From: Guillardia theta CCMP2712 | Lineage: Eukaryota > Protista > Cryptophyta | Direction of reading: 5' to 3' | Assembly (NCBI RefSeq): GCF_000315625.1 | Contig: NW_005434639.1 | Span: 594,134 to 658,133, forward strand | Length of the DNA stretch: 64,000 nt | Shown here: piece by piece, positions 29,430 to 36,563 of the stretch | Position numbering within the stretch: the first letter of the stretch is position 1 | Layout: every line of letters begins with the position of its first letter | Position numbers and translations under genes: made by a program | Notes under the pieces: model-generated | What the model was told of the DNA's origin: nothing | The model's input: only the letters and a program-made list of their open reading frames with translations | Database searches by the model: none

Positions 29430-31472
29430 GGTATGATTTTACGCAGTGGTTCGTTGACGTTGACGGGAGTTATTAGAATTCAGCAAATAGTCCTGAGGTC
29501 CCTTGCATACACGATTGCTTGGGAATGTATCGGGCAGGCCAGGTCCCCGCAGGGAATTATTGCTCGACCCTTACTAGAGGAGATTTGAGGAAATGATGCA
29601 GGAGACAAAGGGTGCCACCAAGTTGGCTAATGGAAGAGCGAGTGCAGTAGGGTCTCCTATCAATGGCTTGATAATGCGAAGAGGAGGAGGAGGCGGATTG
29701 TGCCGCGAGCGCGCAGAAGAGATAGCACCTCAGGGGCAAGGTTGCAAAGCGATATACTGTGATCCATATGGGTGGGTAGTAGTACCTACCATACTAAATT
29801 TGTTTCTACAAAGGTAAATAGAGGGGTACGACCGTATTGACTTTGCTCTTCTATTCCTGTGGGGTGGCACATAGGGTGGCACATGTGACTGGGGTAAATT
29901 AATGTTTCACTGCAGTCCGAGGTTGGGTTGCAGGTCTGTGAGGGGTACTTGCAATATTGGTGGTGGGGGTACTTCCACCACATTGATACAATTCATCTCT
30001 TATGAATGCATATTATAAAAACACAGAGCATAACCTTGCTTGCCGTTGATGAGGGGGTGGGGGTTGAAGGTACTTGAAAATTAGTGGGTACTTGAATTTT
30101 TGAGGTGGGGTACGTGACAAAGAGACTATTTTACTATTTTAGTGATGACGTCCAAAAATTGAAAACTACTCTCTTCAAGATGCAAACCATTATCTCTCGG
30201 AGACCACCCCGAACGGAGTACCCACCCCGTGTGGCATCCACCCCCTACCCCTTGTGGACCATTTCAATACCTATGACCCCCTTTGACAGGACTTTTGGTA
30301 CCGAGAATTTCATTTTCTTAACTGAACTACCTACCCACTGTATTCACAACACCCACCCTACCTCGAATATCTTCGATTTCCCGACAATTCCCTTCGATGC
30401 TTACAAAGAGTGATCGTTGCTGACGCACAGTAAAACGGCAATTTCACTATGGGCTAAGGTAGGTATTCTCTTAAGTGAGTAATTAGACAATCAGGGCAAA
30501 GGGTTCAAGCTGCCTCTGATGGGGAAGGGCCACTGTGACTGTAAGGGTAAGCACATGACCCACAGAATGGATACAACATTTATACTATTAGCTGGTCAGA
30601 GATGAAATAAATGAATTAGGTAATTGTATTGGGTGTTCTGTGATTTCTTTTTTCTTTTTTTTCCTTTTTTTTTACAGGGTGTCCATCTCCACATGGACTC
30701 CCGATTCTCTTTCCAGCGCAAACTAGGAGGTGGGGGTCACCATTGAGGAAGTGAAGCATGGATTTGGTGGGTACTTGAATGACAAAACCATGGGTAGTGA
30801 CGACAGGTTCGCTACTAGTTCGTCGCATGGGTGGGGGGTCATCAAGGGTAGGGTACTTTCATGGCTTCGTAGGGGTGGGGGTGATGAATGTGGGGCGCTG
30901 GGGCTGTAGAATTTTGGCTCGGTTTGGTCACGAGCGGCACCATAAATCTGCAAATCTAAATTTTGCCTCTAAATATTGAAGTATTCACTGATTCTTTACA
31001 ATATTCTGCAGGGCACGCGAAATACTTTGGGATGGGGAGGGTGGCCGGAAATCGTACGGGTGGGGCACAAACCCGGCCACCGAAGAAAGCATGCTGTAAG
31101 GATGCGGGCGTAGTTTGCCTTCATTCGCTCTCCTCCTTTCCCTTCCACTTCCCCCCCTCCCCCTCCCCCCCAGCCACCTCCCCATCCTCTCTGCTACTCG
31201 CTCCTCCCCTCCTCTATCTTTCTCTCATCCCCCTTCTCGGCAGTATAGATCAGAGCCTCTTCGTATCTTGGCAAGAAGTACCTGCCCTGTTCTGGCCCCC
31301 AGTTCATCACAAGACTTCTCCCAGTGAGAACCTTGCTGATCAGTTCAGTGACACTCGTAATCGAAGAGAGCCACTTGGTTCTTCCTGAAAACAGGTGAAA
31401 CCCTCGGAAAAAGGATCTACCCCCTGCTAGTTGGTGTACCCTGTATCAAAACAGTAGGGGGTAGATTTTATC

Positions 31473-32440
31473 ATGAAGCTTCCTTCTCCTCAATCTGGTC
31501 GAACATTGGAGGAGGAACTCAGTATTCTCCTGCAGTTTCAGGAGAAACATGACAACGGAGATTCAGGAGAGATCAACGGCGAAGAGTTGAAGAAGCGTGT
31601 GAGGGTGATCAAGAATCGGATCGCTGCCAAGAAGTCAAGGGAGCAAGCGCGGACTTACGTACAGAAGCTTGAGAGCAGCTTGAATGCTGTCATGGCTCAT
31701 AACGATGTCCTTGCGCGGCGCCTTGCCTTGGTTGAGTCCGAGAATCGATCGCTCAAGCATTCAATGTTCATGACTGGCATGAACTTTCAACCCATGAACA
31801 ACTGTAACCGCGTCGACGAGTCTGCGGCACTCTCGACCTTATCCCTGCTGTTGGATGCGGTTCTGTTCATGATCGCCATGGCCTCCAGTTTCCTTCCTGG
31901 TTTCAGTCTGAGAGCATGGGAGGACAACTCTCCGGTGCACCAGCTCCCGGCTACCCTCAAGCAGGAGACGTGCTCGCTAACATGGACGCGTTCAACATGC
32001 CATGGGCGAGGAGCGCGTCGATGTTTGAGATGGCTCAGGATGGCAGGCCTCTTGCAATGCGTTGCGCACTCGTGCCATCGTTGGGACCCCAAGGTGCCTC
32101 AGCCAGCGACAGCAGCATGAGTCCGAGCCCTGTGCAAGGAGCTGGTGCTGGGGCAACGACTGCTCCTCCTTCCTCTCAATGGCAGAGAGGAGCATACACT
32201 AGTGGCGACGAAGGCTCGGAAGCATCAGAACAAGAACTGGACGTGCCCTCCCGGTCCGTGGAGAGTGTTGAGTCCGGAGCTGCTGCTTCTTCAGTGGAGG
32301 CCTGCGATGTTGACTCTTTCCCTTTGCTGTGCCCGAAGGAGGAGACGAATGAGGTGATTGAAGCTGCCGAGGATGATTTGTTAGACCTTCTCTCCTGCGA
32401 CAGCTCTTGCTCCCCGGAAGACGGCTTGGACTTGTTCTAG
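31473..32440 (+). CDS. bZIP transcription factor, XBP1/HAC1/bZIP60-like. Unspliced form 31473-32120 (215 aa, membrane anchor); predicted spliced form 31473-31824 + 31848-32440 (314 aa, acidic tail)
   Basis: Basic region KKRVRVIKNRIAAKKSREQAR and leucine zipper LESSLNAVMAHNDVLARRLALVESENRSL, followed by ESA and the hydrophobic LSLLLDAVLFMIAMASSFL. An overlapping second frame is joined exactly by a 23-nt excision. Confidence 0.9.
31793..31871 (+). other. Predicted IRE1-type unconventional intron (31825-31847, 23 nt) within a bifurcated stem-loop
   Basis: Hairpins GAGT-CTG|CGGC-ACTC and ATCC-CTG|CTGTT-GGAT. Basal stems AACCGCGTC/GATGCGGTT and CATGAACA/TGTTCATG. No GT-AG ends. Confidence 0.85.
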
Positions 32441-32713
32441 GACTTGAAGTCTGTTTGAAGAAGAGAATAAATTCAGAAAATACAAATTTGCCCCTGCCTC
32501 CCTACTCGTCATCCTGGATCCTCGTACTGTTGCTGTAGCTCCCCTTTGTTGTCTCTTCTGCCTCTCCTCATCCCCCGCCCTCCCTCCCTCCCTCCCCGCA
32601 TTGCACCCCGTCTTCACACATTCCGCCTCTTCCATTATTGCGCCCCGTTTCCCCCTCACTGACCCAGCCCCTCCTGCAACAAACTTTCCTGCCCTGTTGC
32701 ACGCACCGCTACC

Positions 32714-36563
<3,850 letters not shown>

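Follow-up and report, generated by a model that had tools for sequence, protein, structure and literature searches.

The 64-kb window of the Guillardia theta CCMP2712 genome analyzed here (the whole stretch of DNA under study, to which all coordinates refer unless another contig is named) contains, on contig C35, a gene for a basic leucine zipper (bZIP) protein whose mRNA is found in two forms that differ by a 23-nucleotide (nt) unconventional intron (Table 1). The arrangement was first proposed in an initial annotation made from the sequence alone, in which the DNA was attributed to an apparent cryptophyte; the source is, indeed, a cryptophyte. The unspliced mRNA encodes a protein of 215 amino acids (aa) with matches to the Pfam families bZIP_1 (E 1.4e-7) and bZIP_2 (E 7.5e-8), both of which exceed the curated cut-offs. 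A TAA at 31805 immediately precedes the +2 frame, which is open from position 31808 to a stop codon at 32438-32440 (211 codons). Removal of 31825-31847, which begins at codon 118, downstream of the zipper, joins the two frames without an intervening stop and yields a 942-nt coding sequence (CDS) for a 314-aa protein that contains the bZIP domain and has an acidic C-terminus. The spliced tail includes 30 D/E against 7 K/R residues and is likely to be an activation domain. The hydrophobic segment that follows the zipper is encoded solely by the unspliced mRNA and is gone from the protein after splicing: the 19-residue Kyte-Doolittle mean reaches 2.13 at residues 123-141 of the unspliced product, compared to a maximum of 0.85 in the spliced one. 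In all these respects, the initial annotation was accurate: the 215-aa open reading frame (ORF), the twin hairpin loops of the form CNG|CNG with stems GAGT/ACTC and ATCC/GGAT, and the hydrophobic anchor are present as described, and recomputing the 23-nt excision gave the same protein.

The mRNA is delimited by transcriptome contigs, including a JGI transcript contig (L010) that spans 31163-32486, and contains no spliceosomal intron according to these contigs; there is no upstream ATG in its 5' untranslated region (UTR). An AATAAA signal at 32466-32471 precedes the poly(A) site near 32486 by 15 nt; raw 3'-end reads carry A-runs beyond 32486, and the flanks are at zero depth.

Table 1. Features of the bZIP gene and its unconventional intron in the G. 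theta window.
Feature	Position	Strand	Basis
mRNA of the bZIP gene	31187..32486	+	Transcriptome contig starts 31187-31239, ends up to 32486
Unspliced CDS, 215 aa: bZIP, hydrophobic region, basic conserved C-terminal peptide	31473..32120	+	
bZIP domain (basic region and leucine zipper), residues 37-96	31581..31760	+	Pfam
Basal stem, 5' arm, AACCGC	31806..31811	+	RNAfold; pairs with 31857-31862; homologous helix preserved in orthologues through compensatory changes
5' splice-site hairpin	31812..31837	+	RNAfold, orthologue alignment
23-nt unconventional intron	31825..31847	+	Transcript contig gap; frame arithmetic
Hydrophobic region encoded by the unspliced frame (residues about 120-141)	31830..31895	+	Kyte-Doolittle; conserved in all orthologues
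3' splice-site hairpin	31841..31856	+	RNAfold, orthologue alignment
Second exon in the spliced frame, 196-aa tail ending DDLLDLL...EDGLDLF	31848..32440	+	
Basal stem, 3' arm, GCGGUU	31857..31862	+	RNAfold
Conserved peptide of the unspliced frame, RRCLRWLRMAGLLQCVAHSCHR, residues 182-203	32016..32081	+	Orthologue alignments

The intron begins with CG and ends with TG. The trinucleotide CTG is present at both of its edges, so that 31825-31847 is equivalent to 31822-31844, and in none of the four equivalent registers are the termini GT-AG. The RNAfold prediction places the two splice sites in the loops of two hairpins that are enclosed by a common basal stem, resulting in a three-way junction. 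The 5' hairpin is predicted to consist of a 4-bp stem, GAGU/ACUC (31818-31821/31829-31832), extended by 5 bp, GUCGA/UCGAC (31812-31816/31833-31837), with a bulged C at 31817; its 7-nt loop, CUG|CGGC (31822-31828), would be cut at 31824/31825. The 3' hairpin has a 4-bp stem, AUCC/GGAU (31841-31844/31853-31856), and the loop CTGCTGTT, that is, CUG|CUGUU (31845-31852), with the predicted cut at 31847/31848. When stems of at least 4 bp and a distance of 15-40 nt were required, this twin CNGCNG pair was unique in the window, both strands included, compared to 0.21 pairs in shuffled sequences. By itself, this count is mild evidence; the case is carried by covariation and RNA data. The folding energy of the single sequence is not significant either (z = -1.34 for the gene in the window and z = -0.56 for a paralogue on contig C53 that is described below), and the support for the structure comes from covariation rather than from energy.

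Direct evidence of excision comes from public sequencing runs of G. theta, four of which were compared over 31000-32700: X8, X9 and X10 at the level of contigs and X23 at the level of raw reads. Run X9 yields a 1274-nt contig with a depth of 36.8 that covers 31197-32486 and differs from the window solely by the absence of 23 nt at 31822; owing to the CTG found at either edge of the intron, this gap is the left-aligned equivalent of 31825-31847. The excised sequence shows where the RNA was cut, and the exact 23-nt-deleted transcript that was anticipated in the initial annotation thus exists. Runs X8 and X10 contain the unspliced form. The contigs of all three runs end at the transcript ends, with zero depth in the flanks, and therefore represent RNA. 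Another run from the same sample as X9, X3, contains 0.99 of the sampled words, and this sample therefore very probably includes the unspliced form as well, which argues against a deletion in the DNA. A search of protein databases with the +2-frame ORF returned only fragments of this ORF, one from an unspliced transcript contig (P0001) and the other from a close relative (P0002).

Two other explanations of the X9 contig have to be considered. The deleted form might be an artefact produced by reverse transcriptase skipping between the CTG repeats or by an assembly error, and the 3-nt direct repeat that flanks the deletion, the structured nature of the region and the restriction of the deletion to one G. 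theta run would all fit such an origin. However, the deleted form is not a rare variant but the contig that the assembler retained, at the depth given above, and assembly from 31-mers requires reads that span the junction. Alternatively, the deletion could be a DNA allele or strain polymorphism, with the downstream ORF translated independently from the ATG at 31916; the ORF 31916-32440 does have its own ATG, and the classification of the Logan runs as RNA is a guess. This explanation is at odds with the contigs stopping at the ends of the transcript and at its poly(A) site, as well as with the likely coexistence of both forms in the sample of X9.

A protein search identified about 36 orthologues of 187-244 aa, one of which, from Hanusia phi, is 90% identical to the G. 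theta protein, and a scan of metagenome and metatranscriptome contigs produced 28 loci. The two CNG|CNG hairpins occupy the homologous position in nearly every locus, and about 20 loci share the structure. The introns of the orthologues are 17, 20 or 23 nt long, that is, always 2 mod 3, and in-silico splicing extends the ORFs from about 200-260 aa to about 290-440 aa, with C-termini that are mostly acidic or aromatic. Conservation of the loops, the helices and the dual reading frame, which the initial annotation had named as a check of its proposal, is thus apparent across the family. In an alignment of 20 sequences and 78 columns (A3), the three-way junction was recovered by unguided RNAalifold, with compensatory changes in 12 of the 17 predicted pairs. 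For the 16-pair structure, 91.9% of the cells are paired, compared to 33-46% when the partners are slid by 1-3 columns; both sides have changed, in a compensatory manner, in 12 of the 16 pairs, and none of 500 shuffles reached the observed values of either pairing or covariation. In both loops of all 20 sequences, the four C and G residues of CNG|CNG do not vary. The 3' loop comprises 8 nt in most orthologues and 7 nt in the group of L029-L032.

Three loci deviate from the general pattern. In L026 (Ga0228707_1014404), the twin hairpins are found around 466-519, and in-silico splicing yields no long frame; the downstream frames appear to be swapped, with the RRAGLL motif located in the frame that is read after in-silico splicing. 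The likely cause is an assembly error or an indel of 1 or 2 nt. The tails of L027 and L028 are truncated, probably, due to downstream spliceosomal introns in genomic DNA.

Splicing in a second species became apparent when a profile of in-silico spliced tails (A4; L012, L013, L018, L019, L021 and L022) was searched against 1.84 billion representative sequences. The top match (P0042, 297 aa, E 9e-77), the N-terminal 107 residues of which are the bZIP part, has the same sequence as the protein predicted by in-silico splicing of L019 and L020, genomic metagenome contigs from an environmental cryptophyte. This protein is on record in ten short contigs, of which six (L044-L049) were fetched, the sources being two JGI metatranscriptome samples and four Logan assemblies. 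All six match L019 near-perfectly, with a 276-nt GT-AG intron in the 5' UTR (L019 2082-2357) removed, and one of them (L045) ends with a poly(A) tail. All six lack exactly the predicted 20 nt (AAGCCCG|...CCCCG|CAGTTGG), which both L019 and L020 retain; therefore, the intron leaves the mature mRNA at the predicted phosphodiester bonds. The spliceosomal intron in the 5' UTR distinguishes this orthologue from the G. theta gene, which has none. In the spliced frame of the A4 group, there is an invariant KRKR that looks like a nuclear localisation signal and is absent from the G. theta protein, and the C-terminus of this group carries a conserved DLW..HEGSPF..EEFxPF.

An artefact would have to have generated the same exact 20-nt excision in six of six contigs from two JGI samples and four sequencing runs, and it leaves unexplained both the conserved second frame of 200 codons and the 2-mod-3 intron lengths; we regard it as very improbable. 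The polymorphism is, if anything, less credible still, given that genomic contigs of the second species retain the intron whereas cDNAs from which the GT-AG intron has been removed lack it, and that several orthologues have no ATG-initiated equivalent of the downstream ORF, the frame junction being found in all.

The two overlapping frames leave a recognizable trace in the divergence between close relatives. The environmental contig L009 (ENA ERZ930071 contig, 806 nt) is 91.6% identical to the window overall, with 2.9% substitutions in the two-frame overlap (31808-32120), 9.4% in the part that belongs to the spliced frame only and 18.5% in the 3' UTR. Identity is 99% over its first 200 nt, where the splice region and the beginning of the dual-coded part are located, with the divergence accumulating in the tail and the 3' UTR, and the indels in the spliced-frame-only part are multiples of 3. 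As judged from this sequence comparison, the gradient of substitutions is one of dual-coding constraint.

The unspliced frame encodes, in addition, a conserved peptide about 40-60 aa after the hydrophobic region, with the family consensus RRSRRxLRRAGLLxCxxHxC, for which the G. theta version is RRCLRWLRMAGLLQCVAHSC (residues 182-201); homologous places were identified in L011-L034. Among 13 orthologues, the entropy of the motif at the first, second and third codon positions of the unspliced frame is 1.10, 0.91 and 1.37, respectively; the third positions are the most variable, which indicates selection on the peptide of the unspliced frame. The geometry matches that reported for plants, in which ribosomes stall some 50 aa past a hydrophobic region, RRCKxxRxRMK being the arrest peptide of Arabidopsis (PMC11077094). 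By analogy, the conserved cryptophyte peptide may be a candidate for a ribosome-arrest or ER-targeting (endoplasmic reticulum) peptide. The Arg-rich part of the G. theta peptide, RRCLRWLRMAG, resembles the Arg-rich RRCKxxRxRMK with which the unspliced form of Arabidopsis bZIP60 (AtbZIP60u) ends, a likeness that is a lead rather than a test.

The G. theta genome encodes the machinery that would be required for IRE1-type splicing, as had been expected if the initial proposal was correct: IRE1 with its kinase and KEN RNase, RtcB and a Trl1-type domain are all represented. A genome profile search detected the KEN RNase domain (Ribonuc_2-5A) at two loci. On C31, the IRE1 exons are found in the order PQQ_2-like (as in IRE1 luminal domains), Pkinase, Ribonuc_2-5A. 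On C559, a 4-kb contig (L039, C559:1-4011), a full kinase domain (E 5e-44) is followed by Ribonuc_2-5A (E 1.6e-23); this IRE1-like copy contains a gap of 446 N and may represent either a genuine paralogue or a fragment of an allele of the C31 gene that was not placed in the assembly. Two loci were likewise found for RtcB, on C6 (E 1.2e-76) and C98, and the Trl1-type ligase domain tRNA_lig_CPD is encoded on C26 (E 1.8e-11).

It is conceivable that the excision is real but that another nuclease, such as the tRNA-splicing endonuclease or an unknown enzyme, performs it in place of IRE1 and without any tie to ER stress; the 3' loop of 8 nt instead of the canonical 7 might be taken as a hint in that direction. 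Against this possibility, each cut follows the G of a CNG|CNG that lies in the loop of a hairpin, and the two hairpins stand on a common basal stem, an arrangement that is the defined IRE1 substrate motif (PMC11077094). Moreover, there is no bulge-helix-bulge motif at the excision site, the substrate mRNA encodes a bZIP protein and has both the hydrophobic region and the switch of frame that are known from XBP1 and bZIP60, and an IRE1 is encoded in the genome. We therefore consider a different nuclease improbable, and the motif points to IRE1 as the cutting enzyme.

Taken at the level of sequence, the gene has every feature by which the class of IRE1-spliced bZIP mRNAs is recognized. In our judgment, it is highly probable that this gene encodes the IRE1-regulated bZIP factor of the G. 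theta unfolded-protein response, the counterpart of XBP1, HAC1 and bZIP60. The same role, that of the unfolded-protein-response effector, had been suggested in the initial annotation and is now supported by the spliced transcript, the machinery, the covariation and the cDNAs of the second species. Under this reading, translation of the unspliced mRNA would produce the 215-aa bZIP protein, in which the zipper is followed by a hydrophobic segment and, about 40-60 residues further on, by a basic peptide. By analogy with the unspliced forms of XBP1 (XBP1u) and bZIP60 (AtbZIP60u), these two elements probably recruit the mRNA, while it is being translated, to the ER membrane. Upon ER stress, the KEN RNase of IRE1 would cut after G31824 and G31847, one in each loop of the three-way junction, and the exons would presumably be joined by RtcB or the Trl1-type ligase, both genome-encoded. 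The loss of 23 nt would shift translation into the +2 frame and give rise to the 314-aa protein, with the bZIP domain kept, the hydrophobic segment gone and an acidic activation tail. The consequence of splicing for the protein sequence follows directly from the excision; the 314-aa product is, presumably, the active form.

Several observations weigh against this interpretation. The dependence of the excision on IRE1 and its induction by ER stress are inferred. Within G. theta, the spliced form was found in one of the three contig-level runs, as one assembled contig. The only raw-read run, X23, is 3'-end-biased, with 60-nt reads and zero depth over 31513-32025; the reads miss the junction and, therefore, provide no splice ratio. 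The 3' loop, with its 8 nt, departs from the canonical 7, and a scan of 31700-31980 against the Rfam covariance models gave no match up to E 10. The 800 nt that precede the transcript do not contain any ER stress response element (ERSE, CCAAT-N9-CCACG), unfolded-protein-response element (UPRE, TGACGTG[GA]) or ACGT core. Finally, a search of the ESM Atlas retrieved only generic bZIP clusters and did not assign the protein to an XBP1, HAC1 or bZIP60 subfamily.

Comparison with the known systems suggests that the sequence design of the G. theta gene is nearest to that of plant bZIP60 and is also close to that of XBP1. In common with bZIP60 and OsbZIP50, the gene has, downstream of the bZIP domain, two stem-loops whose loops read CxGxxG and a flanking stem, and the Arabidopsis bZIP60 intron is, as in G. 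theta, 23 nt long. In both cases, splicing drops a hydrophobic or transmembrane segment and adds a C-terminal region (PMC3216516, PMC11077094, PMC12781897). The differences are that the cryptophyte gene belongs to Cryptista rather than to Viridiplantae, that the cryptophyte 3' loop mostly consists of 8 nt and that the introns vary between 17, 20 and 23 nt. This likeness concerns design. The initial annotation described the gene as a hybrid that combines a plant-like intron and anchor with an animal- or fungal-like gain of an activation tail. The plant-like intron and anchor stand, but the hybrid framing is overstated because plant bZIP60 also gains a functional C-terminal region, so that the C-terminal gain is not only an animal or fungal trait (PMC12781897).

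The resemblance to XBP1 extends to the layout of both products. Splicing of XBP1 shifts the frame onto an activation domain, as proposed here for G. theta, and the 5' hairpin of the G. theta intron is nearly the same as that of human XBP1 (GAGUC-G-C-GCACUC, peptide ESAAL). RtcB, the ligase that acts on XBP1 in metazoans, is also present in G. theta, together with the Trl1-type domain. In XBP1u, a hydrophobic region and a C-terminal pausing peptide target the mRNA to the ER (PMC11077094), a layout that is similar in G. theta. The two genes differ in the length of the intron (23 nt in G. theta vs 26 nt) and in the direction of the shift (+2 vs +1), and there is no sequence similarity beyond the bZIP domain and the hairpin.

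Among fungi, HAC1 and Hxl1 are alike in that IRE1 cuts two loops and the spliced tail is a stronger activation domain. In S. cerevisiae, the HAC1 intron is 252 nt long and prevents translation through base pairing with the 5' UTR, and HAC1 lacks a hydrophobic region (see also PMC11077094); in contrast, the G. theta intron is tiny, and the unspliced mRNA appears to be meant for translation. Among algae, CrbZIP1 of Chlamydomonas is translated from an IRE1-spliced bZIP mRNA with twin stem-loops that lack complete CxGxxG motifs (PMC11077094), whereas the cryptophyte CNG|CNG is strict in both loops throughout the 20 aligned sequences.

IRE1 itself occurs in most eukaryotes. In the searchable literature, descriptions of IRE1 mRNA substrates are confined to animals, fungi, green plants and green algae, and a cross-eukaryote survey of the pathway does not mention protists and algae (PMC4891664). 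No IRE1 substrate in cryptophytes or other protists was found in the searchable full texts, absence from which is no proof that a description has not been published; the statement in the initial annotation that no cryptophyte description was known agrees with this outcome. The gene analyzed here thus puts a name to an IRE1 substrate of Cryptista, supported by transcripts from two species and by strong covariation. If this assignment is correct, the twin-loop bZIP frame switch would predate the split of very distant eukaryotic groups, and the layout with a hydrophobic region and a conserved peptide probably predates that split too. On a more practical side, the intron could serve as a splice-based reporter of ER stress in an ecologically important algal group. 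The gene models should be corrected given that databases carry only the 215-aa form (213 aa in Hanusia phi).

The window gene is not the only candidate switch in the genome. A covariance model built from the A3 alignment (R1) was searched over the whole genome (87.1 Mb, 669 contigs) and produced two strong matches, one to the window locus (66.6 bits) and the other to C53:463706-463783 (67.2 bits), with the next match at 19.7 bits. Hence, a model derived from the cryptophyte alignment can find further copies of switch genes. The second locus (L041, C53:462206-465283) encodes a paralogous bZIP protein that is 50% identical over the bZIP region and shares the three-way junction and a 23-nt CNG|CNG intron; a hydrophobic segment is encoded as well, and the +2 frame, which is open for 190 codons, has an acidic end. 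The paralogue groups with the environmental loci L034-L037, both being on long branches. The protein search for the spliced form of the paralogue yielded only a 158-aa fragment (P0055), with no RNA evidence of splicing, and no convincing motif is common to the upstream regions of the two genes. A broader scenario, which we put forward tentatively and consider doubtful rather than probable, is that the design of XBP1u and bZIP60u, in which exposure of the hydrophobic region and a ribosome pause bring the mRNA to IRE1 at the ER, is ancestral to a very deep eukaryotic node and that cryptophytes run two paralogous IRE1-spliced switches, those on C35 and C53.

Downstream of the bZIP gene, the window contains a perfect 12-nt tandem repeat, CTCCTCCGCTCC (33140-33258, 9.9 copies), inside the ORF 32714-33292; in one frame, this repeat encodes reiterated LLRS.

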